Assembly (NCBI GenBank): GCA_002269645.1
Contig: NIVC01000033.1
Location: 547,335-611,334 of the forward strand
DNA from: Macrostomum lignano
Lineage: Eukaryota
Direction: 5' to 3'
DNA: 64,000 nt
In this document: in pieces, positions 13,394 to 64,000 of the stretch
Layout of the letters: each line of letters starts with the position of its first letter
Numbering within the stretch: position 1 is the first letter of the stretch
The notes under the pieces: model-generated
Databases searched by the model: none
What the model saw: only the letters and a program-made list of their open reading frames with translations
What the model was told of the DNA's origin: nothing
Program-made: the position numbers and the translations under genes

Positions 13394-13552
13394 GGCCGAA
13401 ATTAATAAAAAATTACTACAATTTCCTGAATAACCACCAGTTCATCGCGGATGTGCTGTTTATTTGCATAAATTATTGTTTCATGTTGGCTTCTGCTTTT
13501 GCGAATGACAATGTGGGAATTGCTATTAAATAGTGGATTCGTTCTGGACACT

Positions 13553-15880: not shown

Positions 15881-16124
15881 ATCTGAAAACAGCTTTAAAA
15901 AGTAAAATCTGATTCCCTATGTAAAAATTCCTTTCAAAAATGTAGAATCTGCATACTGAAGTGAATCTCAGCTCGTATTGCATAAAAAGCGATACAAGCG
16001 AAATAGAGAGGAATTCAGAAGGACACAAAGGACGTCTGCTATTATGCATTTTAATCATATTGTGACGAGATTAAATCGTAGTAGGCGACGTTATTGGCGC
16101 TTCTGACGCTCAAAGCATATCACT

Positions 16125-17624: not shown

Positions 17625-19269
<1,645 letters not shown>

Positions 19270-19296
<27 letters not shown>

Positions 19297-19763
19297 AGTA
19301 TGTCACTCATGACAATCGAAGTATGTCAACACCTGACACGCCAAGCATGTCACTCCTGATACTTAAAGCATGCCACTCCTGACACTCCAAGCATGTCACT
19401 CCTGACATTTAAAGCATGTCACTCCTGACAACTCAAAGCATGTCACTCCTGACAACTCAAAGCATGTCACTCCTGACATTTAAAGCATGTCACTCCTGAC
19501 AACTCAGAGCATGTCACTCCTGACAACTCAAAGCATGTCACTCCTGACATTTAAAGCATGTCACTCCTGACAACTCAAAGCATGTCACTCCTGACAACTC
19601 AAAGCATGTCACTCCTGACAACTCAAAGCATGTCACTCCTGACATTTAAAGCATGTCACTCCTGACAACTCAAAGCATGTCACTCCTGACAACTCAAAGC
19701 ATGTCACTCCTGACAACTCAAAGCATGTCACTCCTGACAACTCAAAGCATGTCACTCCTGACA
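19270..19763. repeat. 23/24-bp TGTCACTCCTGACA minisatellite (copy 2)
   Basis: Duplicate of 16248-16742. Confidence 0.93.
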
Positions 19764-20646
19764 TATTTTGTCTACTTTTATTATTATGAGTCTTGCATGC
19801 GTCACAGAGAGTGACAGCGAAAAATATCTATTGCAGTACTTCAGCCAGGTGCTTTATAATATAGGATTAAAATAACGGAATAATAGACGGCGCGGAGCGG
19901 CAGGGAGACAGACACCCACCTAGCTAAAAAAAAGTTGTTTACAAAGTCGCATGCAGAGCGGCCTGACTTGAACCCCCAAAACCCATTGTGCGACTGACTG
20001 TCTCGAGCAGAGAGTAAACAGCCTGCCTGCCATAATTTACCTGCTGCACTGCGCTGCTCAACTGCTCTCTGCATCTCCGCGGGCGGGCTGAGCCGTACAT
20101 TTAGTTAGTAATAATCTGGACAGAGCATGCACATTGTTGTTGCATTGGGAATTGGGGGCTGCACAGGGACCGAGAGAGAGGTAGAGGGAGACAGGAGGGC
20201 AGGCAAGCGAGTACAGGCTACAGTGCGTAGTTAGTTTACAGTATCCTAGCAACCAGAAGAGAGCTGTGAGGGTGGAGAGCTGGCGAAGGGGATGGGTGCA
20301 GTCACTCACAGCACCCCTGATCATTCTTTCTCGCTAAGCCCGTCATGGCGCATAAAAAAAGCAACACGCATTGAGTCGCAGAAGCCTTAGCAGCGATAAG
20401 AACTTTTTATTGGTGTCTCTGCACTATAGTAGATCATTTTCTGGGAGAGAAACATAAAGTACACTGGGATTCGTGTAAGTTCAAAGCTTTCAATAAGTTC
20501 TTATTAAATGCCTAATCGCACGGCTTGTACATGTTTTTGCGATGCTATGCATATTTTACGCGGCTAATTTTATTATCAAGCCTAAAGACACTAAGTTTAT
20601 TACCAACTATGGGGCCATACATGTAGATACGAATCAAGTACTATAG

Positions 20647-23573
<2,927 letters not shown>

Positions 23574-32759: not shown

Positions 32760-34944
32760 TCAGACCAAATCAGCTTTGAAGATCTTCACTGTGCAGTCGG
32801 CGCTGCCGGACACCACGTGGCCGGTCTCCGACCAGTCAACGCTGGTGACGATGCCGCTGTGGTCCCTCAGATCGTACAGCGGCGCTTTCGTGCAGCGCAG
32901 GTCCCACAGTTTAACGACGGTGTCGCAGCCGCAGCTGGCGAACAGCTGACTGCCGGGCTGGGGACACCAGCGCACCCCGCACACCCAGGTGTCGTGGGCG
33001 TTGAAGCACGCGATCAGGGTGTCCCCGGAGCTCCTGGGATCGTACAGTCGGGGCTGCGGACCTGCACAACCGGCTAGCAGGGCGCGGCCGTCCGGTCGGC
33101 TGTGCAGGCTCAGCACCGCGCTCGGCGCCCTGAGCATGGCGGACTCGGCGCCAACCTCCACGTCCCACAGACGGGCGCTGCAGTCGGCTCCGCCGGAGAA
33201 CAGCTGATTGGCACCGGCGTAGGCCACGGCGTGAACAGCGTCGCGATGCCCAGCCAGGGTGCGCAACGGCACCCGGCTGGGGACGGAGTGCTTGCTCTGG
33301 TGGCTGATGCCGCCTGGTCGGCGAGAGGAGAGCGACTGTTAGTGAGGGCTAATAATATCCCAGCAACTGCGGATCTGGGAGGCTGGCCCAGCAACTGAGG
33401 ATCTGGGAGGCTGGCCCAGCAACTGAGGATCTGGGAGGCTGGCCCAGCAACTGAGGATCTGGGAGGCTGGCCCAACAGCTGAGGTTTTGGGAGTATGACA
33501 GATGGCTCAGCAACTGAAGATCCGTGGGGCTACAGCAACTGGCATCAGATAATCCAGGTGGTGGGCAAACCTCAAAGCAACGAAGTTCACACAGCAGCGC
33601 ACCTGTCTCAGCCGCCGTGCCCTCGTCGCTGGAGCGCCAAAGTTTCACCTGGCCGTCGAAGCTGCCGGATGCGAAATGGCCGAACGCCGGGCCGGGACTG
33701 CCGGCCGCGCAGAGCACGGAGGAGGCGTGGCCCTTGCACACGGCCAGGCAGCGAGCAGCGCCGGCCTCCCAGCGCCAGATCCGGCAGTCCTGGTCGTGCC
33801 CGGCCGACACAAACTCGCAGCTGGTGTCGGCGTCGCCTTGACCATCGGTCGTCGTAGTCAGCCAATCGACGGCTTTCACTTCTTTCTCGTGAGCGTCGGG
33901 CAGCTTCAGGCTGAGCTCGGCGCCGCCGTCGATGTCGCCAATGGCTACGCTGTAGTCATAGCAACCGACTAGGAGGTGCCGGCCGCGGGCGCGCACGCAG
34001 CTGACCAAATTGCCCAGCGCCAGCTCGGCGTGCGGCGCCGGAGCAGAGCGCCGGGGGAAATATTCGGCGCGAAGAACTGCGTCCATGGCCAGGCCGCGGT
34101 CTTCGACCAGCTGGCGAAGACTGCCGACCAGCAGCTCGTCCTGCACCAGGAATTCGAACTCAGCTGGCGTCGGACCGGAGTTTGCGTCCTCGGAGGCTGC
34201 GAGATTCAAGAGGAAGGGGATCCGAGAGGATTACTGTTAGCAAATGGATGGGAACTGGATGGTTTTGATGGAGAATGACGACAGGAAACTGTTGATGAGG
34301 CATTGGGACTGGGAAGAATTTTGTGAGGGATAGAGATTGCGAAGTAGTTGATGAGGGACGGAGACTGGAAAGTGTTGATGAGGGATGGAGAGTGGAGGCT
34401 GGGGAGAAGTTGGTGAGGGACGGAGACTGGAAAGTGTTGATGAGGGTCGGAGACTGGAAAGTGTTGATGAGGGATGGAGACTGGGAAGTAGCTGATGAGG
34501 GATGGAGACTGGGAAGTAGTTGATGAGGGGCGGAGACTGGGAAGTAGTTGGAGGGACGGAGACTGGGAAGTAGTTGGGGGGACGGAGACTGGGTAGTTGG
34601 AGGGACGGAGACTGGGTAGTTGGAGGGACGGAGATTCGGAAGTTGTTGACGAGGGATGGAGACAGGAAATGCAGTAAAAACCACTGTGCAATCAGGACTC
34701 ACCATGATCTGAGGCCAGAAGACTCTTAACCATGTCACTGAGGTCCCCCCTGCCGCTGTCTAGTTGAACATAGATCGGATAGTTGCTAACAGAAAATCTA
34801 AAAGCATGTAAACAAGTAGCATTTCGACTCTGTTTTAGTACAGTACAGTTAGATTTATTTTCATGATAGACACCAGAATGAAACTCACTTAGAATCCTTA
34901 GTCACAAAGGAAACTTGCACTCTCTCTGTCTCTGCATCATCCAT
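32760..34944 (-). CDS. WDR12: Ribosome biogenesis protein WDR12/Ytm1, 4 exons, about 432 aa
   Basis: Exons 34944-34889, 34797-34703, 34196-33603 and 33313-32760 are phase-consistent (1299 nt). N-terminal ubiquitin-like/NLE region (VQVSFVTK...DLSDMVKSLL...EFEFLV...EYF..SAP), then WD40 repeats ending VKLWDLRCTKAPLYDLRDH...VDWS...VSGSADCTVKIF, characteristic of WDR12. Confidence 0.9.
33358..33480. repeat. 28-bp minisatellite GGCTGGCCCAGCAACTGAGGATCTGGGA in WDR12 intron 3
   Basis: About 4-5 tandem units. Confidence 0.85.
34330..34670. repeat. Degenerate G-rich minisatellite (GGGACGGAGACTGGGAAGTAGTTG-like) in WDR12 intron 2
   Basis: Tandem degenerate units. Confidence 0.8.
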
Positions 34945-39889: not shown

Positions 39890-42800
39890 CTACAGACTAT
39901 CGCGCTGAGAGTTGATAGTGTATTTTCCGCCAGGACTAGAGCAGGATGATATAGCGCCAGTATCTACAGCATCGGTGACGCGACTGCTATCCGAAAGGGT
40001 GCTGTATCTTGCGCTGCTAGGATTCGGTGCTAAATTTGCCACAGGATCGACAACAGACTCGCCGTAGTCGGCGCTAGCATCTGCGCCTGAATTGGTCTTA
40101 GCAATCTTGGCAGTGCCTGAAGTGTGGTAAATAATAAACACGGGACAGTCGCCAGTTTCGTCAGCCTCATAACGACCAACGAGCTCTCTGATCATCTCCA
40201 TCGAGAACAGCGACCGATTCTCCCTGTGCAGCTCTACACTGGTGCACAGCTGACAGTCGGCGCGTCCGAATCCGCCAAAGTAGGCCACGGAGCCGCCGCC
40301 GCTAAAATGCGGGCACTCCAGCACCTGAAGTTGGCCTCGTCTGTTTGCAAACAGCCAGACTGAGCCAAGCCATGGCACCGTGAAGCGACTGGGTACTAGT
40401 AGACTGAGGGAGTCCTCCTGGTCGGCTTAAAAATATTAGTAGGGTTAGACGCTTTTAGGATTCGGCACTTTAAACAGGTACATGTGTATATAGCAGCAAA
40501 TCGCATTTTGCATATAGCACAAAAAAGTTAGGGTTTGACATTGTCCAGAGTTAATGAGCAGAGTAAAGTGTCACAATAGCGTCCTTTTGAAGTACTTGTG
40601 CTTCTCAGGCTGCTCTAGCAGTGTTTTGGGCTCTCCGTCAGCTTTAAGCGGAAGCCTTCTTGAAACTACTGTACTTTGGACTGCGGAGGGAGCCAGAGCT
40701 TGTCATCGGACTATAGTTCCCATGACAAGGGGAAAAGGCCCACTAGTGACGTTGAGACGGGAAAACAGACAGTCCACTAACAAAGCACTGGTGACCGCCA
40801 CAGAGCGCGAACCAAGAGCAGGCTGGGCCAAGCTGCCCAGCACTGCAAACAGAGCACAGGGAAAACGGGGCGGGAGCAGGAACAGAGAGCAAAAGATGGG
40901 AACTGTGCCCCAGCGGCACGGGAACTGCTGACTAGAGTGAGACACCAAACAGTAATCCTAGTGAAGATTACTACACTTTTATAATTTAATTTTTTACATG
41001 CCGCTTAATCATTTTCAAATCTGCGATCTGCGATCATTTGTAAATCACCATCATCAAGTAATTTAAATTTAACTTACCAACGAAAAAACCCTGATCGATG
41101 GTGACATATCGAATCTTGACTCGGTGCTGCTGCGGCCCACCCTCGAACCAGATGATCTCGGCGCCAGAGTCCACGTAGCGCATTGGCGAGAAGTCCAGCC
41201 GCATCTCCGCCTGCAGCTGGAACGGCTCCTTGCTGTAGGCGTTCAGCACTACTCGGCGGGAGATGGTGTAGAATGAGCACAGCAGGATGCGCGTCTCACT
41301 GACCGATACCTGGGAGGTTTTTCGAACAAGTGAGTTTTAGATTTGATCTGCAATCTGCTTTAATAGTGTTTAAAGATTCCATATGGTCGAGTTGTACATA
41401 AATGTAGCTTTTTCTTAACTAAAGTGTGACAATTTTTAATCTCAATTGCAGCAACTTGAATTGGACTTAGTGAACATTTCGGATGAATTTCAGTCATTAT
41501 TATCAGTACATGCCTACTTAGCACATCCATGTACGAGGTGTGGCCAAAAAGTAACGAGAATTTAGCTACAAAAACTTTCTGAACAAATAAATGCAAATTC
41601 AGTCAACTGCACCCTTCAAAGTAATTGCCGCCACTTTCAACACATTGCCTCAATTGCTGGTGCCAGCTCCTGATGCAGCCCTGGAAGTCCTCCTTCATGA
41701 TGCCCCTCAGCACCCCTGTCACACTCTCCTTGATGGCATCCAAGTCTTCAAATCTGGATCCTTTGAGAACCTGCTTCACCTAGGGAAAGAGCCAGGAATC
41801 ACACGGCGCCATATCCGGTGAATAAGGTGGATGGCGCAACTCTGCGACCAGTCTTTTGGCCAAAAACTGTCTCAATGTCCCGATGACCAATCGCAGCTGC
41901 TTCTGATCGTCATTGAGGAACTTTGTCACCATCTTTGACGCTCTCCCGTCCATCCCCGGAATCGCTTGTGCCACTAATACACTCTTGCCTGAGACATAGC
42001 ATCATCTCTATGTTAAAGCACAAAGCAGCTGGAGGCATTCCGATGGCTTCTTGCCGAGTTTCACCTAAAACTTGATGTTGATTAGTTGCTCATTGTTTAT
42101 TTTTTGACACGGCAGTGTGACAGCTATAATGAAAAATAATTAAAAAATCATGAAAACCAAAACATTTCGACACAATACTGCTTTCTATAAAAGCTGAGAA
42201 GCTGAGCTTCAAGAAGACATCGATTAATTTTAGTAGAAGTTTGTATTTTCAGATTTAAGCAGCAATTCTCGTTACTTTTTGGCCACACCTCGTATACTCA
42301 GCAAAATCGAAAAGTCGCCATCACAAAAGATTCCGTCTGTGGTCCCCACTTTTGAGAGTGCAGGTGAAGTCTCTCATTCTTTGCGAGTGACGCAACTCAG
42401 GTACACCGCGGCAGACTTGAGTTGAGGAATGAAAGTCGGGGGAGCGGTGTGCAAGGGTTGGACGGATTAAAGCTACCCCTGAGTTTTCTCGTACCTTTTA
42501 CTTCATACTAGTCCAAGAGAAATTGCTCACTGGCGCATAGAGTGGCGACTTTTCAATGTTGCTGAGTGTAGTGATCCGCTAGTTGGTGTTAGGCGTCGCA
42601 CTTTGTCAGCAGTCGCCCTTGCCTTCGCCCTCGCCCTGGGTTGCTGTCTGCCGCTGGTCAGCTTCCCGCCTCCCTCCTTTTGTCTGTCTGTTGCTGCTCC
42701 CTTCCCTCGTTTTGCCCCTTCGTTTCCCAGCCCTCAGCTTCTCTCCTGTGGGCTGTCGCTGTTTCGTCAGTCTCGTTTTCCCCTGTCATGTGAGCCAGTC

Positions 42801-45057
42801 ACATGACAGATTTCTCGTTCTTGGAGTCTTAAAGTTTACTGCACTCGCTGGTCCTGTTTACTGGGAGAGTCACGTGCTTTCGGTCCCCTCCCTTCTCTAA
42901 GGAGAGGAGTGATTCATGTTGCTAAAAATAGCAACTGAGTCACAGCCGCGTGTACTTCTGCCCGGAGACCCCAAGTGACGTCAGTTCTAAAAATAGAACG
43001 AGTCACGAGGTCTTGAGCGCATTGGGACTGTGCCCGGAGGCCATGAGTGACGTCAGTTCTAAAAATAGAACGAGTCACAAGATCTTGTGCAATGGGACAG
43101 AGGTGAATCCCGCGCTATAAATAGGACCCCTCTCCCCCTTGTTTCCGTCAAGGAGTTTTCAGTTATCAGTATTTGTAGCCGAGTTCCTGAGATTCTGACT
43201 ATTCGTCTTCGGAATCTTCTTCTTGTCAAGTTTTCCAGACTTCGTTCAGTTGCCCATTTAAGCTATCACCAATTGGCCTGACTAAAACTTAGACGCCCAA
43301 GCCTAAGGGAGGCTAACACTGCCTTCCAGCCACCCCTGAGCCCGGCGGGGATCTGCTGACTAGGACGCCTTGTTCATTAATCTGCAAATCTGCACTCTGT
43401 GCTGAGTTCGTTGACTTGTTTATTTCGTTCCGACGCGAAGCTCACCTCACCGAAGGCCGAGACCTGAAGGAACTGGTGGCAGCACTACCTACGCTACTGA
43501 GAGAGTTAAGAAGGCTTCCGAGTGAGAAGACGGAGAGCCCAAATCACTGAGCGGGACAGCGAGACAGCCCCGAGACAACCATAAGTACTTCACTGAGTAT
43601 ATGCTACACAGTGAATTAGGGTGCATCAATGATGCCTATGGGGCTGTACACTTTGTGTGAGCGTGTGTACTGCGTGCCTGTGTACAGTATCGCGCAATTG
43701 TCGCCGTACACGCATGTGCTCATGAGCCATCGGAATTGAGCAAAATTGTCGCTGAAAGCGCTGCGCCAGGGTGCCTACAACTCTTTTGCGAGTGTAATAT
43801 TATGGTCTCTTGCAACAGATTTAGGTAAAGGTGCCCTGCCATTGCTGCCCTGATACCCAAGTGGCTAATCTTACTTAAGTTGGACGTGCGTCATGATACA
43901 TCCGCAATTGGCAGCCTTCCGAACCTTGTGCGTTTGCTTACTTCTGTTACGAACTTTATCCAATTGTCGGCGGCAAAGTTTTACGTGCTTCAAATTTGGT
44001 TTCAAACAAAGCAAACTCTGTCGTAAGAACAAATTAAATGCCATTGCAAATCAAAGTACTAACCTGAAAAGGCGACTTGGCCTCCTGCGGCACGTATCTC
44101 TCGCCAGCGTCGCTGCAATCTAGCATCGATACAAGCTGCAACTCCGGCACCGACAGACGCCGGATGCAGTTATCAGACTCGCTGGGCAAATAGAAAATTT
44201 TATCGGTATAGCAATAGCAGGGCAGGATGGTCAGGCCAAAGTGCAAAGTTCTCAGGAGCGTCAGCTGGGCGTCGAATACCAACAGGCCAGAGCGGAACGT
44301 GCCGCCAGCATTGAATCGGCAGTTGAGTAAGAAATGGCCGCAGTGCGACAGCCAGCTGTGCACGACGCCTTCAATTTAGGAGTACACGTAATTAATATCG
44401 ATTCGGTGAATGAGGATACGTTCTCAGTGCTTTTATACAAAAAGGTAATAAAATGGCAATGGTACTCTACACTTCAACAGCCAAGAAAAGAAGTTCAAAC
44501 TGGTCTATCTATTGGCCACCCGCAGAGCTGAACTCTCCCTTTCAGAGAGCACCATAGCTGCCGGCGACACTGGGGTACCTCCCTGGGCGGCGCCAACCCT
44601 TCGTCCATAACGACGCGTCGGCCGTTCAGGGATTAGCGGAATGGGCGTTTGCGCCTTCCCGCTGAGTCCCCTTCAGGGACAGCCCTGCAGCTAAGTCAAG
44701 TAAGTCAAGGTCTATCTAATAGCTTTTACAAGTTCTCGGCAGTGTTACACCTTGCTAGGACAAGCGTATAACTTCCGCATTATTTATACGTCAAAAAATA
44801 GCACACAACTCACTGGTAATTATTGCGTTCTCTATCTGCCTGATGTACACAAGCCGCACAGCTCGGAACTCATCCACCTGAACTCCTCCAGTAGGCACTG
44901 ACTGTTCAACGGCTACTCGGCAAAACTTTTTAACCACCAACTGGCGCTGCTCAACGAGGGCTGCGTAAACAACGCCGATGCGGTCGCTGGAGTCGGCTTC
45001 GTAGTCCCAGTCGAAGACGGAGACTCGAGGCGAGAAGGGCAATAATATTGAGGTCAT
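39890..45057 (-). CDS. Uncharacterised protein, 4 exons, about 438 aa
   Basis: Exons 45057-44814, 44368-44064, 41309-41078 and 40425-39890 have canonical GT/AG ends and matching phases 1, 0, 1 (1317 nt, open). No family recognised. Confidence 0.65.
41534..42292 (-). mobile_element. Internally deleted mariner (Tc1/mariner) element
   Basis: TIR CGAGGTGTGGCCAAAAAGTAACGAGAATT at both ends with TA TSD. Remnant HPPYSPDMAPCD...GNYFEG C-terminus is joined to an N-terminal piece; the catalytic core is deleted. Confidence 0.92.
42420..43483 (+). mobile_element. Gypsy-like LTR remnant (about 1 kb) with an upstream PPT and a downstream PBS
   Basis: Purine tract GAGGAATGAAAGTCGGGGGAGCGG is followed by TGTG at 42449. 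TATA-like CTATAAATA near 43115, duplicated TGACGTCA-containing blocks, and TGGTGGCAGC (tRNA-Leu-type PBS start) near 43474. The 3' end of the LTR lacks a clear CA. Confidence 0.55.
44512..44708 (+). mobile_element. Short retroposed insertion (LINE 3' end or SINE-like) with AAGTCAAG tail
   Basis: TSD GGTCTATCTA at 44502-44511 and 44709-44718; 3' block GGATTAGCGGAATGGGCG...GCCCTG..AAGTCAAG is shared with the LINE ending at 54686. Confidence 0.8.
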
Positions 45058-46154
45058 GTTATGTGTGAGCAGCAACTGTTTTGCTTTGCAGTACTGCGTT
45101 ATGTGAGTGCTGCATTAAGAATTTGGGAATGATGGCTAGCTGGTTAATCGCAGCTATATAAGTCTTAGTCGTGATTCGCCCCATAGACTAATTGGTCACA
45201 TAGATTTTTGGGAGAGATTGATTTACTTTGTCACTACGAGTATTTGAAGCGAACTTTATTAGCATTGTTAAGTTTATTCTTGTTGAAAATCATGCATAAA
45301 TAACTCCATGACTGAAGGTTCACATGTTAATTTAAATAACTATATTGATTAATATTGGAGACTGTGCATGTACAGCTTACACCGCCTATAAAAACTCTGT
45401 ATTTTGGAAACAAAAAACAATAAGACTTTGCCAATAAATCCACAGATAAAAAAATATCACACGTTAAGAGCAATACATGGTCTGAAGGTTTTTTATACTT
45501 ATAGATCTTGTTATAAAACATTTTATTTAGATGAATTTTGATTGTTTCCACGGGTATTTCAAGCGCAAGCACATCTTTAGATAGAACACTGAATCTATCT
45601 ACAGTGTATCTTAGATCAAATAATTTTTGTCAACTTATTGTCGGCTTATGGCAGTGAAATTGTTTTCTTGGCCTTTATCGTTCTGATGCCTTAAGGTGAA
45701 AAAGCTCGCCCTGTTCGTCACTCATGCGCCCTGACTCTCAGGAAATCTCGCCAGATGGGAATTGAAAATCTTATTGTTCACATTGCAGACAACCCTACCA
45801 AATGCAGTCATCAGAATTCATAAAAAGACGCACTTTTTTGATACTGTAATCACTTGTTTCTTTTAAAAGGCCTGTTTACGCTTGAAATATCAGCGGAAAA
45901 GCGTTGCAAACTTCAGCTTGAATGAGAATTAAACTTTTCATATGAAATCTAATTTGCATTAAAACGTGCTTGATTAAGCAAAATAAAGACGATTTTCGGA
46001 TTAGTGCACTAAATTATTCCCACAATCCAGCTGAAAAACCCAGAGCCAGCTGCTGACCTGCATAATAATATTATGCCAGTACTATTCTAATTTGAACTAC
46101 AAACGAGGCCAGCAAGTGGAAGCTAATCGGCAGCTTTTTTGTTACCAAAATTTT

Positions 46155-48216
46155 TTAAAGTACATGCACATGCATCAGTGTTGCATCAGCAGAATCGCTG
46201 CTCATTTCCTGCTCTCCTCTGTCAAACACCTGCAATGAATGGATGAGAATTTTATGAGGAAAATAACTTCTAGTTGAGTGAAGAAGCTTGGATTTTTCAC
46301 ACGAGTGTTTCAGTACCTTCAACCGCTGCGCCACCTCGTCAGCCAGACGTCTGGGAATTACGGTGAGAGCTGCCTGCAAATCGCGCCAGGGCTCGATCAG
46401 CAGCTTGGCTTCACGGTAGAAACTGGCACCCACGACTAACTCCTGGATGTCCGCACCAACTCTAAGGGCAACGGTGTTGACCCAGCGATGAGCATCCTCA
46501 TCTTGGGGCGTTAACTCCAATCGGAGACTGTGCAGGAAGGCGTCAAAGTTTACATAGTGATAAGTGACGTAGTTCTGCAACCGCAGCGGGAAGCAGTCGG
46601 ATAAAACTGCCGGCAGGAACTCAAGCTCAGGGCGCTGATCAAATTCAAAGCAGAATTTCCAGGCTGAGTCGTTGCTCCACAGGTAGTGCCACATCAAGTC
46701 CTTTGTAGCTTCAGCAGCGGACCTTTCAGACCGCCATGAGATGCCTTCGCTCACTATGTGCCCTCTGCAGTCTGCAAGCACCTTCAATGCTGCATCCCGG
46801 TCTCTGAACTTCAGAAACGCTAGTGCTTTAAGAGTTTCTCGAGCCGTGCGCGCACAATCTGGAAGCTGGCTAATGTGCTGCAAGAGCGACTGCTTGAGCT
46901 CTGGACTGCTGCAGTCACGCTGAGATAGGCGGACAAGCGACTCCCTCACGAAATCGTAAATTTCATGATATTCTACGGTGGCAGACATTCGAACTTTATT
47001 TGCTTTCATTCGAGGCAGAATTAGAAACGGATGGAAGTGAAATGTTCCGGTATTAGTAAGGGGCCTCAATGTATGGATAAATTTAATTAATAACTCCGGA
47101 AGTCTCTTCATAACGTATTGAAGCACTCTAGATATTTCTTGAGAACTGCTTTTGTCTGCACCTTTTAGATACAGAGCAGCATCGCACAGGAAGAAGTGGT
47201 TCATGATTTTGTCTTCTGGCTTAGTTGCAGCTTCATCTTCGCTGCAGCTGCTCTTGACGCTGCTTGATAAAATTTTCAATGAGCGTCTGATTTGACTTAC
47301 GAGATTTTCCGGCTTCCATTGGTCAGAAGGTGTCTCCTCCAGCATTCGAAACGTGATGGTTTTCACGTGATACGCCTTCACGCCTTGCACTCGACGGCAG
47401 ATGATTTTTTTAACCAGATACTTGAGCGTCACGAATAGCTGTCCCTGCAACGTGCTGAGACTTCGGAGTAGCCGCTTCTCAAGGAAGGTTGTGCTAACGC
47501 GAAGTTGCTTACCGGATTGCTTCGGAGGGGCAGCATGCACCACGTGACAAGGTGAGTTTGTCAATTCGCTCTCGACTGACTGCAGTATCGAGTGAGCAAT
47601 GTTGGAAGCTGATCGCCGGGACGGAAGAAGGGGCGCGATGGGAGGGTAGCAACAGAGACGGCAGGCTGCAACTATATCCACTGCCGGCTTCAGCGAGGAG
47701 CCCCGGAAGGGCTTGGCCGGGTTTGTGGCTGAAATTTAGATTTAGAAAAAGTAAAATATTAGCATCTTTTTCAAAAATCTATCTATCACAAAACTAGATA
47801 GATAAAAGATGTCATTTCGGTACAAGTATACTGGATCAATCGCATAGATTAAAACAAAATTTTCTTTACCAAATCCGGAGCAGAGAATGTGTCCATTTGT
47901 GTATTCAACTGGATGCAAATTCCTTTCTTTACAGCTGCAATGATGCTTGAGATGGTAGAGTCTGCCCCGAACCAATTCCATCACGTCAATGTCGGACTCG
48001 ATATCAGTTTTCCCATCAAGACTCGTCAGACTGTTACCCCATCCTTCGGAGAAGCTCCCAACCACAAAAATATCTTCGTACGCGATTCGCTTTCTTAGAA
48101 TCTCCTGAAGGACGTCAGCCGCAGCTGCCTGAAGGGCAGCTCTTGAGGCAACGAATCCGGCTCGACTGAGGGCGGCGTGCAACTGCTCGCCCAGCTCAGT
48201 TTCGGTCGAGGGGACC
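46155..48216 (-). CDS. Mab-21/cGAS-like nucleotidyltransferase domain plus C-terminal helical extension (exons 2-3 of the fusion gene)
   Basis: NTase motif VVGSFSEG...SDIDVM, third acidic strand AVDIV, Mab-21 motifs LRVSTTFLEKRL, LKYLVK, AYHVKTITF and NHFFL. Confidence 0.88.
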
Positions 48217-50997
48217 CTGAAATTCCAGAAAATGGTAGTTTTTTTCTCATTCGTTTCCTTAATATTTAATGAATCTAGCGGTTGCGCAACAAAGGAAAGA
48301 TTTTTTCTACTGAGAAATTCGGTTGGCTCATAAGCACTACATTGATACCACAATGGGACAATACTACTGAGAAATGTACTCAAAATACAGATTTAGGGAA
48401 CAGATTTGGCATTCGATGCGTACGATTCAGCATTTAAATTAAACTAAGGAGAACTTAAGTATTTGCACTTTTATAATAAAAAACTTGATCTGAGACACTC
48501 ACTCTTGATCAGTAGCATCCATCGCGCTGGATCCAGAGTCATCGTCCAGCTCTACTTCCGTCCAATAAAGCTCAAGTTCCTCGAAGTGATATTCAGCTAA
48601 AGTGAGCAGCGTCACCACTTGATGGTGCTTCAACAGAGACGCTGCCTTTAGTGGCGTCAGGCCGTCCATTCGCGGAATGCTGACGTCGGCTTGTGCTTGA
48701 ATAAGCGAATCCACAACTTTATGATGCCCATTTAACGATGCAGCAAATGTCGGCGTGCAACCTTCAATACAACGGCAGTTCAGGTCGGCTTGAGCCTTGA
48801 TTAGTAAATCCACCACCTGGTTGTGACCATTTTGTGCAGCAATGAAGACTGGTGTGCAGCCGTCACTTTTTACAATATTGACATCGGCCATCGCACGAAC
48901 CAGAAGGCTGACTACTTTGCTGTGACCTTGAAAGCATGCGGCAAACAGAGGAGTGCAGTTATCTGAACTGCTCAAGTCTACAACAGCTTGCGCCTTAATT
49001 AGCAAGTCAACTATTTGAATATGATCGCTCAAAGCTGCAATGTACAGGGGTGTCATTCCGTTTTCTCCTTGGCAGTCAATATCGGCCTTTGCTTTGATCA
49101 GTGTCTCAGCTATTTGGTAATGACCGTTTTGACTGGCAATGTATAGTGGCGTTGTACCGAAGACGTCTTCTCTAATGTTCACGTTCGCGTGAGCTTTGAT
49201 GAGCGACTTAACTACGGGCAGATGATTGTTCAGGGATGCAACGTATAGCGGCGACATTCCATCGTCGCATTGCGTATTGACGTGAGCTCCTGCTTTAATG
49301 AGTAAGCTCACGGCTGCATGGTGCCCGTCTTGTGAAGCGATGTATAACGGGGAAGCCCCAACGCTGTTTGGAAGATCTACGTCAGCCTCAGCCTTTAAAA
49401 GTGACCTGGCAACCTGATGATGTCCATTCTGACAGGCCAGATATAGCGGTGACGAGCCTGTTTCTCGCTGAAGATTAACGTCGGACTGAGCTTTGATAAG
49501 AAGTTGCACCACTTTGAAGTGATTTTGCTCTGATGCAATGCTCAGAGGTGAGCCGCCTGAGTTTGTTGAAAGATTGACGTCAGCTTGTGCTTTGATCAAC
49601 AAGCTCACCACTCTTTCGTGGCCGTTTTGTGATGCGTAATAGAGCGGCGATGCTCCATCTTTGTCTGTAGCGTCAACTTCGGCTTGAGCTCTGATAAGAA
49701 ATTTCACCACCAGATGGTGACCGTTTTGAGAAGCGATGTGAAGAGGTGTGCACTTATAATCGTCTGGCTGATTAACATCTATCTGTGCATTTACAAGCAT
49801 TTTAACTACGCGATCGTGACCGTACTGGGATGCAGCAAATAGTGCTGAGGTGCCTTTCGCTGCTTGGATATCGACGTTAGTTTTTGGGCATCGTAGCAGC
49901 CGTTGGACTACACGAAAATGACCTTGGATTGATGCAATACAAAGTGGTGACATTTTATCGTGCTTTTGTAAGTTGACATCTGCTTTAGCCTTAATGAGCC
50001 TGTCAACCACTTCGAAATGTCCGTTCTGGGCGGCAACATAGATAGCTGTTGCTCCATGATCATTCTGAAGATCGACTTTGGCATCTGCCTGGATTAGTGA
50101 GTCAGCCACTCTAACATGACCTGTCTCAGATGCAGCATGCAGAGCAGATGAGCCCTCTATGAGCTGAAGGTCGATAACAGCTCCTCCCTTAATTAGCGAG
50201 TCAACGACCTTATTGTGGCCTTGAAGCGCGGCAGCCATAAGTGATGATATCCCACTTCTTAGTTCATGATGGACGTCGGCCTGTGCCTTGATGAGAAAAT
50301 CGACCACTTTCGAATGACCTTGTCGGGAGGAGATGTACAGCGGTGAGCAGCCACTGATTTCAAGAATGTCAACATCCGCCTGCGCCCTGATTAGCGAGTC
50401 CACAACTTCATGCTCTCCAAACTGCGAGGCGATGTACAATGGTGTAGCTCCCTCGAAACTCTGAAGGTTCAAATCGGCTTGAGCTTCTATAAGCATCTTC
50501 ACAACTGGGTTATGACCATTCTGTGATGCAATATAGAGTGATGTGCATCCGTCGCACCCTTGAACATCAACGTCCGCACCCGCCTTAATCAGCGACCTCA
50601 CAACACGATGGTGGCCGTTCTCCGAAGCAGCGTACAGAGGCGTATTGCCATCGATTTCCGAAAGACCAACATTCGCGCGTGCTTTGATAAGGGCGTCCAC
50701 CAGGTTCTGGTCGCCACGCTGCGATGCGACGTACAGTGGCGTCTCCCCGGTACTTAATTGGCAATTCACGTCACATGCAGGCGTGTCGAAGAGCATTTGA
50801 GCTATTTGGTCGTTTCCCACCACGCAAGCCAGGTGCATTGGCGTCGCAAGTTCACCGTCATAAAGTATTGCTCGATCAACCCTCATACCTGCAGCAAGCG
50901 CTTGTTCTATTAGTTGGACATTTTCTGCTTCAATAGAAGCCATAAACTCATGCTCACTGATGTCAGAACCGTGAGAATTTTCTTTTTTTGCTGACAT
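46155..50997 (-). CDS. Ankyrin-repeat / Mab-21 (cGAS-like, cGLR) nucleotidyltransferase fusion protein, 3 exons, about 1471 aa
   Basis: Exon 1 50997-48503 (donor GA|GTGAGT, phase 2), exon 2 48216-47870 (acceptor TTTCAG|G, phase 2; donor G|GTAAAG, phase 1) and exon 3 47728-46155 (acceptor TTTCAG|CC, phase 1); total 4416 nt, open. Confidence 0.8.
48503..50997 (-). CDS. Ankyrin-repeat array, about 23 repeats (exon 1 of the fusion gene)
   Basis: Counted 23 TPL/SPL-type 33-aa repeats (G.TPLYIASQNGH..VV..LI.A.AD). Confidence 0.95.
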
Positions 50998-52725
50998 GAT
51001 TCAATGTACAAGTAATTTTTCGCACTATACAGAAACTTACTGTCGATTAGTCAATTATAGTTACGAGCTCCTACATTTTGTGCGTTGTCAATTCAGTTGT
51101 CGCTGGTTGGGCTTCCTTTTAGGTAGCAGGGCAGCCTAGTTATTATCTAAGAAGGCCAAACGCATGGCCCACGCGATACCGCGCAGAAGAAATTTTCTAA
51201 ACAGCAACACTGTCGGCAATTATTGTGCCTAAGTGCTTTTAGACTGGTGAGGGTAGACATAACGCGAATTTGGTGATAGTGTACACTCGTACCATTACCA
51301 TGTACAATAAAATGGAGTGCAGGGAGGCTCAAGTAAATGTGAAAAAAACGCTTGACAACACTTATAGCCTACTGTACTGGAGATCGTACACTACTCTGAA
51401 CCTGAATATGCTTTTGGACCAATATGTAACGTCGAATACGAATACATATTACGTACTGATATATGCATGCTTTTGCATGCCAAACTGTATTCAGTAGAAA
51501 ACCAATTGCCACCCTTCGACCGCATAAGCAGCAGAGGACATTGGTACATGTATATGCCTACTTTGTGCAGTCTATCATATCTAGCCTCCCAATTCCCTCC
51601 CCCCTGACTGTCTTCCTCCACCTCTTCTGTCGCAAGCTACAGACGTAAAGTACAATGTGTGTACACTCTAGCTAGCTAGCTGCCTCTTCCCTCTCTTGTG
51701 TCTAGTTCATTTCTGATTACTTCCTCATAGCAATTCCCGGGAAAAGTCTTTGACACCGCTTCGTGCAGTTGAATTGATAAATTTGGTTTGTTGTTTGAAC
51801 ACTCTCGACACTCTGAGCTGGAATTATCTGCTCCTAATTGTCCATGTCTGTTAGTTTAAAAAGATGATTTGTGTCAGTTGTTTTAATAATATCCCGAATA
51901 AAGCCATGTATACGAACTACCAATTAAACATTGTTCCATGCGAGATTTACGGGTAATTTTCATTTGCCGAGCTACATGTATCAGGCGAAAGGCAGCTCTC
52001 AAATCTCACATTCCGACGTTGTTTAATGTCGAAGTAGCATTGCAATTTGCTAGCAACGTCGTTAAAACATCGGCCAACTTCTGATTATGGCAGCACGGGC
52101 ACCGGTAGCATATACGATTGGAACACTACCATGAATTATGGCACGAATCACTAGAAATAAACTTGAATACACACGTACTGTACAGTTATTGTTAGCGGAA
52201 TAGCCGGAGGAGGAACAGAGAAAATTAGAGTGCATGCACAAGGACTACTAAACAACACATGACATTACTTGCAAATATTGGCAGAATTCTAAAAGGTCGC
52301 TTTGAATGTATGCCAATTAGTTAAAAAAATTAATAGAAATTATAAATGTCTAGTGAATAAAGCCTTTTATGTGCACTTTCGTATGTAGCCGTATTGTACC
52401 AACACGTCCGGTTTGTCCGGTTTGATGGCTATGTTTTTGGCGCTGAGAAAAATTCATTTCATTTTCGTCAAACTCCAATTCAAGTCGACAATCTGTTGAC
52501 GCAACTTCTATAAACTCTGATTCACTTTCGTCAAAGTACGTCCAAAATCGTCAATCGTGTGAAATTGAAGGTATAATGTTTTACAACGGTAACTTTTATA
52601 GTTGGTCCTTTGATGGTATTGCGAATAATAATTATTTTTTACATGCAACCAATTATAGGTAAGGAATAAAACAAAAATAGGCGAGCTAGAGAGCTAGAGG
52701 TCAAAGCCCCTTGTGAGACACAAAA

Positions 52726-54686
52726 GGAAGCCGTTCTAGGTAACGCTTTGCTGTCTTCCTCCTGTCTTCTTGGAGCCTTTGATAACGTTCTCTTCGAGGC
52801 TTTCGACAGAGCTTTACGTGCTAGAGGAACCCACTCGCACCTTACCCGGTGGATCTATGATCAGCCACCGTACTGCCACCGCGCACCTGTTGGGCCACCA
52901 ACGGACGGTAACCGTCTGCAAAGGCAGCCCCCAATGCAAGGCGGTGTTCTCTCTCCAGCTCTCTGGAACATGCCCGCTTGACAAAATAACGTGATTTTAC
53001 GTGAAAATTACGTGAAATTGTCAAGCGGGATGGTCATCGATGAGCTCTTTCAGGACAGCCATCTTGACTCCATCCTCAAGGTCGGTTATGCCGATGATGT
53101 CACAGCCGTGACATCCGGGCCATGACCTGAAACCCTATAATGGGATCTTTTACAAAACTTTATTTGCTCTGCTGAATTATGGGCGGACAGGTGTGGCATC
53201 AGGCTCTCCGAGATCAAAACTGTCGCGATCATGTTCACTAGCAGGGTTAAATGGCGTATTCGCCCACTAAAGCTTTACGGGGTGGAAATCCCATCCTGCA
53301 AGCAAACCAAGTGTCTCGGCGTTACGCTGGACCACAGGCTGAGCTGGTCCACCCACGTCCAGGCCAAAACCAAAAAAGCCCTCGCGATTCTTGCGCAGCT
53401 GCGCAGAGCCGTTGGCACTACATGGGGCCTCACCCCGAAGCGGCTCTGGTGGATCTATACCGCAATAGTCCGGCCGGCCGTTACTTACGCCGGCCTGCCC
53501 TGGACCTGCGCCTTGCAGATTAAAACCTGCCACAAAGCCCTAAAAAGGTGCAGGGACGTGTGTGTCGCATGGTCATGAAAGGCCCGCTCTCTGCTCCTTT
53601 TGACGGCCTCAACGCCTTCCTCTGCCTCCCACCCTTGCACATCTTCGTCCGTCGGGAGGCTGCTAAAACCACCCGCCGGCTCATCGAGGCTGGCGTTAGC
53701 TTCAAGCCGCAATTGAGCGATGACGAAGCGCAAGTTTCTGCCGCACTCTGATTTGTGCCTTAAAATTCTGAAGGAGAGCGGGAGTGCGGCTGTCCTTTCA
53801 GACGCTGAGCCGCGCTCCCTCAATCTCTACCAACGCTTCAAGGTCACTATCCCCTCCAGGGAGAACGCCGACGACAGCTGGGCCCCTCCAGGGGGTCCAC
53901 TGCTTCACTGACGGATCCTCCTAAAACGGCACATCCGGCTTTGGAGTTTGTTTCCTTAGCCGCCTTGCAGGCACTGTGTCATACCAATACCAACTCCCGA
54001 ACAGTTCACGGCTGTATTGGGCAGCTCAACAACCTGGGTCGGAGGAACACCGTCCGGCTTACCAGGGCCTAGGGCATGCCGGGTTCAGAGGTAGCGAGCT
54101 CGTGGACTCCCTCGCTAAGACGGGTAGGCTCCAGCTCGCTTCTTGGCCCCTCGCCTCTGGCCCCCATCCCCGCCACGGTCTTTAATCGCCAGATTAACGA
54201 CTGGGCGGATATCCTGCTCCTGCGCATGCAGATGGGATGGTATTTCCGACTGCCGTCAATCCCGGGCGGCAGTGCCCAACCCGTCCCTCAAGCTGCAGAT
54301 AATGCTTTTGAACCAAAATCGAAAAGATATCCGCGCGAAGCGAGCGAACTCCTGCCTCTTTCAACCTTGAAAATGAAGATGGCAACTATCACTTCATCTG
54401 CTACTGTCCGGCCTTCAAACGAGACCGGCTCCACTACCTCGGGTCCAACCCGTCCCTCGATGACGCTTGCCGGCCCGAGAACATCACACGACTCACCCCG
54501 GTTCCTCCTACCAAACGAGTCTGCCGTCTTCCCCACCGAAGACAACGCTGCAGACAGGACTGACAGACCTCCCTGACTGGCCCCCCGCCCTAGCCTATGC
54601 GGGCTCTTCAAGGATTAGCGGAATGGGCGACGCTCGCCTCCCCGCGTTTTCGGATCGCCCTGTAGCTATAAAGTCAAGAAAGTCAA
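52726..54686 (+). mobile_element. 5'-truncated, degraded non-LTR retrotransposon with RT and RNase H remnants (R1/LOA-like)
   Basis: Motifs QGGVLSPALWN, GYADD, KCLGVTLDHRLSW, WGLTPKRLWWIYTAIVRP, and an RNase H-like TDGS remnant. Tail AAGTCAAGAAAGTCAA; TSD GAGACACAAAA at 52715-52725 and 54687-54697. Many stops and frameshifts. Confidence 0.9.
52973..53029. mobile_element. 57-bp micro-MITE nested in the LINE RT
   Basis: 12-bp TIR CCCGCTTGACAA/TTGTCAAGCGGG; 3-bp TSD ATG; removal restores LWNMVIDEL. Confidence 0.85.
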
Positions 54687-60707: not shown

Positions 60708-62589
60708 ATGGACCAGCTCGACCTGTTCAACGAGGCTCTGTCGCAGGACTTCGGCAGCTCCGGCGCTGCAGGCCAGCAGCAGCCGAACGGCGCCAGCGAG
60801 ACCAACAATAACGACAAGGACAAGCCAAACAATGGAGCTCCGCATTCTGTTGCCAATGGCAACGGGCCTCAGCAGGCGGCGGTTGAAGAGTCTTTAGAGG
60901 ATTTGGACGATGACGAAATTGACAAGCTGATCATCAAGCCGGGTCAGCAACCTGTGACGTCAGCTCCTGTGCCATCAGTCCAGTCTCCGAATCCCATCAT
61001 CGTTCGTCATCAGTCGGTTTCTTCATCTAGCAACGGCATAGCAACCACCGCGCCGGCCCCCGCAGCCGCCGTGCCGCCTCAACATCGCTACCAGATTGTT
61101 CGCGGGACCTCCGTAGCTTCCGGCCTGCGCGCCCCGTCTGGCGCCGTCATACTGCAGGTGGCGCCAGGCGGAGGCGGCGCCGGCGCGGGGAGCCGCGGAC
61201 AGGCGGTGATCCGGCATCACGTGATCGTGTCGTCGTCCTCTTCTGCTGCGCTGCGATTCGCTTCGCCTGGCGCGCCGGCGCCTTCTTACGGCGGCGTCCG
61301 GCCGATTGTGCGTCTGGCACCGCCGCAGCTGCCACGGCAGGCGCCGCCGCCTCCGGCCGATAAGCCGACTGACCTGCTGGAACTGGCGCTGGCCGAGAGC
61401 GGCCTCGGCAGCTTGACCGGCGCGTCGCAGCAGCAGCCACCACAGCCGCCACCAGTCCAGGTGCCGTTCCAGGTGCGCTTGTCCACTCCGCAGAGTTTGC
61501 CACGCAGCAACCACCGCCAGTCTGGGCCTGTCGGCGCGCCTTTCTCGCCGTTGGTCTCCGTCGGTCAGCCGGGCTCGGGTTCGACGACGCCTCAATCGAC
61601 TCTGAAATCGGCGGCGTCCGCCCCGGCGCTGACTCAGCAGGAGCGCGAGCGGTTGGCTCGGGACCGACTGGCGCATCGAAATTTGGCGCTGCGCCGCCTG
61701 CGCGAGGAGGCCGCCGACGAGTTGGAGGACCAGCTGGAGGAGCTGGGAGCGGCGGAAACCTACAACGACTACAGGTGACCTCGAGTTTTGCATTTCAAGG
61801 CGGACTCGAGTTGTCAGTCTATGATAAATGAGTCAGGCATGATATGTCAGTCTATGCGAATGAGTCAGACATGATTTGTCAGTCTATGATAAATGAGTCA
61901 GGCATGATATGTCAGTCTATGCGAATGAGTCAGACATGATTTGTCAGTCTATCATAAATGGTCAGGCATGATTTGTCAGTCTATGTGAATGAGTCAGCTA
62001 TGTGAATGAGTCAGGCATGGTTTGTCTGTCTATGCGAATGAGTCAGGCATAATTTGTCAGTCTATACGAATGAGTCAGACATGATTTGTCAGTCTATACG
62101 AATGAGTCTGATATAATTTGTCAGTGAGTGAGGCCTGACTTGTCAGTTTGTATTGAATGAGTCAGACATAACTCTAAGTCAACGTCGACAATGAGTCAGG
62201 GCCTCATGCATTCTATCTCGCCCAGGCCGCAGAAGCTCCGCATCGGCAGCGCCCACCCGGATGTGGTGGTGGAGTCCAGCTCCCTCGCCGCTGTGGAGCC
62301 GCCGGACGTGCACTACGAGTTGCGCCTGCCAAGCGAAGTGATCGATGACGCGCTGCTGAGCAGTGCTCAGCTGGAGGCGGTGGTGTACGCCTGCCAGCGG
62401 CACGAGACCATCCTGCCTAGCGGCCAGCGGGCCGGCTACCTCCTTGGCGACGGGCCGGGCATGGGCAAAGGCCGCGTGTTGGCCGCCCTGTTGTACGAGA
62501 ATTACCTGCGCGGTAGGAAGCGCGCCCTGTGGCTGTCCGTGTCTAACGACCTGCGGGTAGACGCGGAGCGAGACCTGCGCGATCTGCTG
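60708..62589 (+). CDS. SBNO1: Strawberry notch homolog, 5' exons (gene continues beyond the window)
   Basis: Exons 60708-61774 and 62226-62589 join in phase 2: [11 protein letters not shown]|[20 protein letters not shown]...[13 protein letters not shown]...[14 protein letters not shown]...[23 protein letters not shown]. Start codon is tentative; the symbol is family-level (SBNO1/2). Confidence 0.92.
61810..62170. repeat. About 32-bp minisatellite GTCAGTCTATGCGAATGAGTCAGACATGATTT in an SBNO intron
   Basis: About 11 degenerate tandem units. Confidence 0.88.
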
Positions 62590-62699
62590 GTGCGTTGGTT
62601 GCGGGGACTGCCGAACAGTAGAACTGGGAGGGAGGTCGCAAGTTCGATTTTTGAGAGGGTTCCGTTTCCATATGCTGTCAGTATTGCTGGAATCTAGAT

Positions 62700-64000
62700 C
62701 TACAATCTAAATCCTATATGTAGAATCCAAATTCCACAGATCTAGAATCCAGATCCCACAGATCTAGAATCCAGATCCCACAGATCTAGAATCCAAATCC
62801 CACAGATCTAGAATCCAAATCCCACAGATCTAGAATCCAAATCCCACAGATCTAGAATCCAGATCCCACAGATCTAGAATCCAAATCCCACAGATCTAGA
62901 ATCTAAATCCCTCAGATCTAGAATCCAAATCCCACAGATCTAGAATCCAAATCCCACAGATCTAGAATCCAAATCCCACAGATCTAGAATCCAAATCCCA
63001 CAGATCTAGAATCCAAATCCCACAGATCTAGAATCCAAATCCCACAGATCTAGAATCCAAATCCCACAGATCTAGAATCCAAATCCCACAGATCTAGAAT
63101 CCAGATCCCACAGATCTAGAATCCAGATTCCACAGATCTAGAATCCAGATTCCACAGATCTAGAATCCAGATCCCACAGATCTAGAATCCAAATCCCACA
63201 GATCTAGAATCCAGATTCCACAGATCTAGAATCCAAATCCCACCGATCTAGAATCCAAATCCCACCGATCTAGAATCCAGATTCCACAGATCTAGAATCC
63301 AGATCCCACAGATCTAGAATCCAAATCTCACAGATCTAGAATCCAGATTCCACAGATCTAGAATCCAGATCCCACAGATCTAGAATCCAAATCCCACAGA
63401 TCTAGAATCCAGATCCCACAGATCTAGAATCCAGATTCCACAGATCTAGAATCCAAATCCCACAGATCTAGAATCCAAATCCCACAGATCTAGAATCCAA
63501 ATCCCACAGATCTAGAATCCAAACCTCACAGATCTAGAATCCAAATCCCACAGATCTAGAATCCAGATTCCACAGATCTAGAATCCAGATCCCACAGATC
63601 TAGAATCCAAATCCCACAGATCTAGAATCCAAATCCCACAGATCTAGAATCCAAATCCCACAGATCTAGAATCCAGATCCCACAGATCTAGAATCCAGAT
63701 TCCACAGATCTAGAATCCAAACCTCACAGATCTAGAATCCAGATTCCACAGATCTAGAATCCAAACCTCACAGATCTAGAATCCAGATCCCACAAAACAA
63801 AAATTTGAGTCCCGTATCTAGAATCCAGATCCTACAGTAAAGATCTAAAATCTAAATCCCATATCTACAATCCAGATCCCACAGATTTAAAATCCAGATC
63901 CCACAGATCTAAAATCTAAATCTCATATCTACAATCCAGATCCCATATTTAGAATCCAGATCCCACAGATCTAAAATCTAAATCCCATATCTACAATCCA
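62700..64000. repeat. 22-bp minisatellite GATCTAGAATCCAAATCCCACA in an SBNO intron
   Basis: Tandem units to the end of the window. Confidence 0.95.

Follow-up and report, generated by a model that had tools for sequence, protein, structure and literature searches.

Does a stretch of the genome of the flatworm Macrostomum lignano in which a long array of ankyrin repeats (ANK) is followed by a Mab-21-type nucleotidyltransferase (NTase) hold one gene or several, and what kind of protein would it encode? The question arises on the minus strand of a 64,000-nucleotide (nt) stretch of contig NIVC01000033.1 (assembly GCA_002269645.1, positions 547,335 to 611,334), hereafter the window, to whose numbering all coordinates below refer unless another record is named. 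The listing of open reading frames (ORFs) in the window contains three that follow each other on this strand, at 50997-48499 (832 amino acids, aa), 48383-47742 and 47681-46155. We are highly confident that these ORFs, together with a short additional exon, form a single protein-coding gene whose product belongs, at the level of fold, to the cGAS-like family. The best overall explanation, to which we assign a probability of roughly 0.6, is an intact four-exon gene encoding an ANK-regulated cGAS-like receptor (cGLR).

Exon structure and the public copy of the locus

The minus-strand ANK ORF ends in CAA GAG TGA GT. As its TGA overlaps a GTGAGT donor that begins at 48502, exon 1 would end at 48503 after two bases of a codon (phase 2). 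The second exon starts with base 48216 behind the acceptor TTTCAG/G (the slash marks the exon boundary). A phase-1 donor (TTT G/GTAAAG) follows 47870, and its acceptor, TTTCAG/CC, leads to an exon 3 start at 47728. When exons 1, 2 and 3 are joined in this way, they read as one uninterrupted frame. An initial annotation of the window, made from its letters alone, had already merged the three ORFs through junctions 48503/48216 (phase 2) and 47870/47728 (phase 1), and both the sequence and the homologous proteins described below place the junctions at the same bases. Its exon count was correct for the first two introns but missed a third one. This intron of 87 nt (GTACTG...TTGCAG, 46316-46230) is in frame and free of stop codons, and lies inside the supposed exon 3, so that a fourth exon is needed. 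The homologues P0001, P0002 and PAA55030.1 (P0049) splice it out (AQRLK/VFDRGEQ), whereas the window ORF has 29 extra residues at this point. Its removal gives a product of 1,442 aa instead of 1,471; if retained, it would still be coding and would add the 29 aa. The corrected gene therefore comprises four minus-strand exons (Table 1). An in-frame stop lies just upstream of the start ATG at 50997, and the N-terminal cap resembles, by eye, that of the full-length paralogues P0006 and P0010. The GC content of the introns is 25-36%, compared to 46-47% in the 2-kb stretches that hold the gene.

Support for splicing came from homologous proteins. With the C-terminal 640 aa as query, 48 proteins were retrieved, of which all named ones are from M. 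lignano and 4 are unnamed metagenome/MetaClust entries. Junction 1 is crossed by P0002 (...SSAMDATDQE/VPSTETELGEQ) and junction 2 by P0001 (...GHILCSGF/ATNPAKPFRG). PAA55030.1 (BOX15_Mlig008354g1; UniProt A0A267E0G3; 1,082 aa), a member of the cluster of P0001, crosses all three junctions; in an alignment of 1,094 positions, it is 97% identical to the window model. The source of the BOX15 models is an RNA-sequencing (RNA-seq) transcriptome, genome-guided and built with StringTie/TACO, TBONE boundary calling and TransDecoder ORFs (PMC5730564). Hence, the junctions have transcript-level evidence, though from a near-identical copy. Further substantiating this, in P0006, a paralogue with 50% identity, an intron in phase 2 immediately precedes the NTase, exon 2 has 347 nt and a phase-1 intron lies at GHIFCPGY/AS; the positions and phases of both introns are homologous to those of introns 1 and 2 in the window.

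The same proteins bear on the alternative that the locus yields two products, with the ANK ORF ending at its TGA and a separate Mab-21 mRNA downstream, e.g., through spliced-leader trans-splicing of a polycistron. M. lignano has many polycistronic, trans-spliced units (PMC5730564), and Mab-21-only entries are found among public proteins (P0001, 598 aa; P0050, 532 aa). However, P0001 lacks an initiator Met and starts one residue past the junction-spanning first codon of exon 2, and P0050 begins at the first Met downstream of the DxD motif and is thereby missing two catalytic residues. With such starts, both look like truncated models. Exon 2 contains no ATG ahead of the GS and DxD motifs, the RNA-seq-derived P0049 is a single ORF across the junction, the NTase is preceded by ANK repeats in at least 30 members of the family, and intron phase and position are conserved in P0006. 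In addition, the spliced leader of M. lignano ends in ATG, which by our reasoning would be out of frame at the phase-2 acceptor of exon 2. Two separate products are highly improbable.

The genomic locus of PAA55030.1 (assembly Mlig_3_7, NIVC01002820.1) is colinear with positions 42199-53632 of the window (11.4 kb) across flanks and introns, with 93.5-99.3% nucleotide identity. To judge from this colinearity, this part of the window is the same locus as BOX15_Mlig008354g1, either as an allele or as a homeologous duplicate; A0A1I8FWI9 and A0A1I8HZY0 are further partial models of it. The fusion had been described as hidden in the initial annotation, a description that has to be dropped given a 97%-identical copy annotated as a single ANK and Mab-21 gene from RNA-seq. 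In the Mlig_3_7 copy, the frame of the ANK exon is shifted by 1 nt near aa 259/260 (about position 3734 of the NIVC01002820.1 record), which is why the annotated start of PAA55030.1 falls on an internal Met (window aa 349). This protein is also without 12 aa that the window protein has in the first NTase helix.

The frameshift may reflect either an assembly error or a decaying duplicate copy. The latter would fit a non-functional, redundant gene in a partly polyploid genome, the assembly of which contains 180 Mb of near-identical duplicated blocks (PMC5730564). Set against this, the window copy has an open frame of 1,442 codons with intact splice sites and catalytic residues, and the substitutions relative to P0049 appear evenly spread, with ~2-3% each in ANK and NTase as read from the alignment; a frameshift of this kind may also be a long-read assembly error. 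Among the explanations considered here, a decaying duplicate is the least probable. Neither the exact protein of 1,442 aa nor the ANK ORF of 832 aa was present in a collection of 15 billion proteins, and no tandem paralogue of the gene was found within the 64-kb window.

Predicted active site and fold of the nucleotidyltransferase

The joined protein contains, in this order, G885-S886, S906-D907-I-D909-V and, after 53 residues, V964-D965-I-V, i.e., the GS...SDID and VDIV motifs that had been read from the individual ORFs. Li et al. (2023; PMC9980059) define the cGLR active site as [DE]h[DE]h X50-90 h[DE]h, and the spacing of D907, D909 and D965 satisfies this definition, with the GS motif also present. 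In an alignment of paralogues with about 31-57% overall identity, conservation is 26/26 for D907, 26/27 for D909 and 27/29 for D965; of the 27 rows spanning GS, 24 retain it. A simple motif count across the wider family likewise found DxD in 92 of 104 members with a GS motif. Conservation of the acids and of GS at such low overall identity is the pattern expected under selection for catalysis. Five further residues between the DxD strand and the region of the third catalytic Asp (H920, C925, C927, H941 and C973) are conserved in 23-29 of 27-29 paralogues. Their codons lie at about 47900-47960 and 47650-47660 on the minus strand, and the site differs from the cGAS zinc thumb; on the basis of this conservation, they may form a structural metal site.

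To place the domain structurally, P0001 was modelled (598 aa, 98% identical to the NTase and C-terminal part of the window protein) from an alignment of 31 family sequences. The AlphaFold2 model reached a predicted local distance difference test score (pLDDT) of 81.4 and a predicted template modelling score (pTM) of 0.82. When this model was compared to the PDB with Foldseek, all 44 matches with E<=1e-3 were mouse or human cGAS or oyster Cv-cGLR1 (8GJW). E values were 1e-6 for mouse and human cGAS (target-normalised template modelling score about 0.5) and 1e-5 for Cv-cGLR1; MB21D2 and MAB21L1 rank after these (E 1e-3). A family profile built from a Mab-21-only alignment, with ANK columns excluded, gave a consistent picture at the sequence level: searched against all PDB sequences, cGAS and cGLR1 alone stood above noise (E 8e-5 to 2e-3, covering the C-terminal lobe, or C-lobe), and the 3 remaining matches had E >=0.28. 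In an hhalign comparison with human cGAS, the sequence of which was entered by hand, CHVVHAA...LRVSTTFLEKRLL paired with FYLVPKH...WRLSFSHIEKEIL, and LKYLVKK...YHVKT paired with MKYLLEQ...YHVKT. Together with the complete catalytic motif, these matches support the reading of an in-frame fusion of ANK to a Mab-21/cGAS-fold NTase. The assignment to the cGLR family holds as well, in that M. lignano members of the family were treated as cGLRs by Li et al. (2023).

Two features of cGAS were not found. The segment corresponding to its zinc-thumb insertion, H(X5)CC(X6)C, falls in a gap of the family profile (hhalign, with the same hand-entered cGAS sequence), and in place of a basic disordered N-terminus there is the ANK array. 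The modelled protein is best described as having the predicted cGAS/cGLR fold and motif, and not as a cGAS orthologue.

Besides the frameshift of the public copy, several points weigh against an active cGLR. The Pfam check recommended in the initial annotation succeeded for the repeats (Ank_2 E 4.5e-174 and Ank E 2.2e-144 on the exon 1 product) and was borderline for the enzyme: the joined NTase had no match to PF03281 (Mab-21), and PF20266 (Mab-21_C) scored 23-24 bits, just under its gathering cut-off of 24.1. Matches of the joined NTase to SLATT_3 and GAIN_A (E 0.25-1) were rejected as noise. The gap from GS to DxD is 20 residues, longer than in the Pol-beta NTase consensus hG[GS]x9-13Dh[DE]h. 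Alignment to cGAS at the sequence level is confined to the C-lobe, so that the three acids are equated with those of cGAS by motif pattern, strand placement (DSSP) and whole-fold similarity; on these grounds, D907, D909 and D965 are predicted to converge in space. We know of no biochemical activity for any family member. The main text of Li et al., which treats 15 selected active enzymes in depth, names no M. lignano enzyme (PMC9980059), and in the planarian Schmidtea neither cGAS nor STING was found in a 2026 study (PMC13563047).

Some of these points would be expected of a catalytically silent Mab-21-like scaffold, comparable to MAB21L1/2, in which the NTase serves as a binding or regulatory fold, ANK mediates protein assembly and the role is perhaps non-immune. 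The unusually long loop between GS and DxD, the missing match to the Pfam model of the Mab-21 N-terminal part and the lack of a named M. lignano enzyme among the 15 selected active cGLRs are all consistent with such a scaffold, as are the presence of MB21D2 and MAB21L1 among the fold matches and the degenerate DxD (N-D-I-N) of paralogue P0102. Yet almost all paralogues retain the three acids and GS, Li et al. (PMC9980059) state that no functional active site is predicted for the genes Mab21L1/2/3, and cGAS and cGLR1 outrank MAB21L1 in fold as well as sequence matches. We consider a silent scaffold unlikely. Whether the ANK-regulated cGLR that we favour is an active signalling enzyme in immunity is evenly balanced on the present evidence.

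Family architecture and proposed mode of action

The gene encodes a 1,442-aa protein of cytosolic type with three modules, namely an acidic ANK solenoid, a basic cGAS-like NTase and a C-terminal domain. The estimate of about 23 repeats in the initial annotation was accurate: 23 were counted between aa 52 and 814, with the repeat motif recurring at a spacing of 33/34 aa 21 times and two repeats contained in one 99-aa gap. An acidic linker follows the array. The computed isoelectric point (pI) is 5.4 for the ANK region (aa 1-831) and 9.2 for the NTase core (aa 832 to about 1185). ANK and NTase had both been recognised from the start, but the third module, a conserved domain of ~250 aa, had escaped notice. 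This domain starts at about aa 1186 and is conserved family-wide, with the motifs FHPFLILP, LPDCA.SARE.L and DSAWKF. The AlphaFold2 model of its contiguous fragment (47012-46317) is helical with a small beta sheet (pLDDT 89.5, pTM 0.89). Foldseek gave no significant match for it in the PDB (best E 0.56). The TRIF N-terminal domain (E 0.56) and TPR-like helices were considered as relatives, were not significant, and no reading was drawn from them. In the searches run here, the domain was found only in the Macrostomum family.

The search for paralogues that had been suggested with the initial annotation uncovered a family of at least 85 clusters at 50% identity. A profile search run exhaustively over 1.84 billion representatives yielded 85 clusters at E<1e-30, and most of the longer ones span NTase and C-terminal domain. 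Among 10 representatives whose source was looked up, all 6 named strong matches were from M. lignano and a 7th strong match was nameless; the weaker matches were 1 bivalve protein (E about 1e-15, Mab-21 core only) and 2 unnamed ENA entries. Among the family sequences collected here, 58 contain motifs of both NTase and C-terminal domain, and a simple count found at least three ANK motifs upstream in 30 of these. These searches show that the gene belongs, as far as sequence can tell, to a large Macrostomum-restricted expansion in which many members have ANK arrays of varying length.

One relative has a different layout. PAA93319.1 (2,111 aa, transcript-derived; NIVC01000031.1, 2001-10307) has two blocks of ANK repeats separated by a cGLR-like domain with a degenerate DxD (N-D-I-N), and carries a caspase domain at its C-terminus (Peptidase_C14, E 3e-27). 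Such a protein could tie the family to effectors of cell death; alternatively, its gene model may have merged separate genes.

Architecture, gene family and species had all been covered by earlier literature. Li et al. (2023; Cell; bioRxiv 10.1101/2023.02.22.529553; PMC9980059) described ~3,000 cGLRs, of which 87% stand alone and some have TPR or ankyrin repeats as fusion partners. Ank_2 domains are given for PAA-prefixed accessions in their Table S2, among them PAA67649 and PAA58690, which are probably from M. lignano, judged from the accession block. According to their Table S3, five M. lignano family members (PAA86972, PAA45980, PAA57558, PAA93208 and PAA68676) were cloned for the screen as NTase-plus-C-terminal constructs, and the expression constructs include at least the start of the C-terminal domain region (PMC9980059). 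The possible novelty of the architecture, raised in the initial annotation, is thus refuted by ANK-cGLR fusions already tabulated in 2023. Literature searches that paired Macrostomum with cGAS or STING, or cGLR with flatworm, turned up nothing specific apart from Li et al. 2023. What is new here is the intact full-length model with 23 repeats, the fourth exon, and a confidently predicted family-specific C-terminal domain without structural relative. The advance is incremental, in that it provides an intact full-length model where the public copy is shortened by a frameshift.

How might such a protein work? In the resting state, the ANK array, the C-terminal domain or both would hold the enzyme off or tether it. 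An activating ligand would then bind; it could be a nucleic acid held by the basic NTase core, or a protein or some other ligand that docks in the ANK groove. On binding, the three-acid site would make a cyclic di- or oligonucleotide. This product would switch on a downstream receptor, which would be STING if Macrostomum has one. The opposite charges of the acidic ANK and the basic NTase would allow an intramolecular masking of the nucleic-acid groove or an ANK-mediated capture of the ligand.

The nature of the ligand separates two versions of this scheme. In the first, the protein is an active cGLR that binds nucleic acid on its basic NTase, and ANK localises, oligomerises or auto-inhibits it, for example with the acidic ANK masking the basic groove. 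Nucleic-acid-sensing cGLRs have a higher pI (PMC9980059), in line with the 9.2 of this NTase core against 5.4 for ANK, and the ligands so far identified for active cGLRs are double-stranded DNA or double-stranded RNA, while the remainder respond to an unidentified ligand (PMC9980059). On the other hand, a zinc thumb of the cGAS type is absent, and the lineage-specific diversification with variable ANK number fits a diversified ligand recognition better. We regard direct sensing of nucleic acid as possible but somewhat improbable. In the second version, the ANK array itself is the ligand sensor. Li et al. proposed ankyrin repeats on cGLRs as ligand- or protein-interaction modules (PMC9980059). 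The initial annotation had gone further, suggesting that the ANK solenoid detects a protein ligand instead of nucleic acid; this must be put more weakly, as conjecture, and the basic character of the NTase core (pI 9.2) is a property that Li et al. associate with nucleic-acid-sensing cGLRs. A sensing role for the ANK array is tentative, and in our estimate doubtful.

A bolder extension of the second version is that the private C-terminal domain couples a large ANK-cGLR arsenal of Macrostomum's own to a non-STING receptor or directly to effectors, and that variable ANK solenoids, and not nucleic-acid binding, provide the ligand specificity. Direct coupling to effectors comes into consideration because one relative is fused to a caspase domain. 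We hold this to be a long shot. If true, it would represent a protein-sensing cGLR system outside the canonical cGAS-STING axis.

The ANK-regulated cGLR reading matters for two reasons. Firstly, how fusions to ANK, TPR or death domains alter sensing, and hence the ligands of accessory-domain cGLRs, is a question left by the 2023 survey. Secondly, Macrostomum contrasts with planarians and most other surveyed flatworms in its cGLR family, as these are without immune-type cGLRs; planarians are also without STING. Signalling by cGLRs has otherwise been largely lost from the phylum, and M. lignano, which is transgenic and tractable by RNA interference, is a practical system for the ANK-cGLR question.

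Coordinates, neighbouring features and related systems

Table 1 Features of the four-exon gene in the window, in the order of transcription; residue numbers refer to the 1,442-aa product
Feature	Position	Strand	Basis or remark
Exon 1, 2,495 nt; ATG 50997, N-terminal cap, 23 ANK repeats, acidic linker	48503..50997	-	Pfam Ank_2; junction read by P0002, P0049
ANK solenoid, 23 repeats, aa 52-814	48556..50844	-	Repeat motif spacing
Intron 1, 286 nt, GTGAGT...TTTCAG, 34% GC, phase 2	48217..48502	-	Homologous phase-2 intron in P0006
Exon 2, 347 nt; N-terminal helix and first half of NTase core	47870..48216	-	Also 347 nt in P0006
G885-S886; D907; D909	48059-48054; 47993-47991; 47987-47985	-	Carried by exon 2
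Intron 2, 141 nt, GTAAAG...TTTCAG, 25% GC, phase 1	47729..47869	-	Junction read by P0001, P0049; position kept in P0006
Exon 3, 1,412 nt; Mab-21 C-lobe and most of C-terminal extension	46317..47728	-	Pfam Mab-21_C, hmmsearch/hhalign, AlphaFold2, Foldseek
D965 codon, predicted third catalytic Asp	47678-47676	-	In exon 3
C-lobe motifs CHVVHAA, LRVSTTFLEKRLL, LKYLVKK...YHVKT			In exon 3
C-terminal domain, 232 aa modelled, continues into exon 4	46317..47012	-	AlphaFold2; paralogue conservation
Intron 3, 87 nt, GTACTG...TTGCAG, 36% GC, phase 0	46230..46316	-	Spliced out in P0001, P0002, P0049
Exon 4, 75 nt including TAA stop (46157-46155); last 24 residues VFDRGEQEMSSDSADATLMHVHVL	46155..46229	-	P0049 alignment

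Elsewhere in the window, an 803-aa ORF at 6270-8681 (minus strand) with RVT_1 and RT_RNaseH_2 domains is part of a retrotransposon of the long-terminal-repeat type and is flanked by 14-bp minisatellites at 5754-6011 and 8892-9254. Further minisatellite arrays with units of 19-33 bp in 10-80 copies occupy 1113-3319, 9545-10538, 12093-21732 and 62696-63987; some units recur at separate sites, such as a 23-bp unit at 17928-18696 and 20950-21724. The arrays account for the strand skews and the overlapping multi-frame ORFs of these regions. Two minus-strand ORFs at 32760-34209 encode WD40 repeats (E 1e-25 and 6e-10); tandem repeats of 28 bp interrupt these ORFs, which probably represent exons of a single WD-repeat gene. 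On the plus strand, 62191-62697 is an exon for the N-terminal part of an AAA_34 P-loop nucleoside triphosphatase domain (E 3e-48), with a motif that we take to be typical of Strawberry-notch-type helicases; a 356-aa low-complexity ORF upstream (60708-61778, plus strand) may belong to the same gene. A 115-aa plus-strand ORF at 53231-53578, containing ...CLGVTLDHRLSWSTHV..., had no Pfam match and resembles the reverse transcriptase of non-LTR retrotransposons in its C-terminal part.

Of the systems to which the gene can be compared, the product of BOX15_Mlig008354g1 is closest. It has the same order of ANK, Mab-21 and C-terminal domain and the same junctions as the window protein, and differs in its internal-Met start and the 12 aa fewer in the first NTase helix, whereas the window copy gives the full 1,442 aa. 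The ANK-cGLRs of Li et al., e.g., the ANK/death-domain cGLRs of Stylophora pistillata, follow the same logic of an NTase core combined with ankyrin repeats; compared to these, the flatworm clade stands apart by a C-terminal domain of its own and a long loop between GS and DxD. Relatives outside Macrostomum, the bivalve cGLRs, match in the core alone (E about 1e-15). With cGAS (PDB 4K97, 6CT9) and Cv-cGLR1 (8GJW), the protein shares the bilobal Mab-21 NTase fold, the GS and three-acid motif and, in the C-lobe, counterparts of WRLSFS..E and SYHVKT. However, sequence identity to both is 13-17%, and the flatworm protein adds 23 ANK repeats and the C-terminal domain. Compared to cGAS itself, it is without a zinc thumb at the cGAS position and without a disordered basic N-terminus. 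MAB21L1 and MB21D2, which are non-signalling or uncharacterised, have the same fold, but the flatworm family, unlike Mab21L1/2/3, keeps a complete active site.

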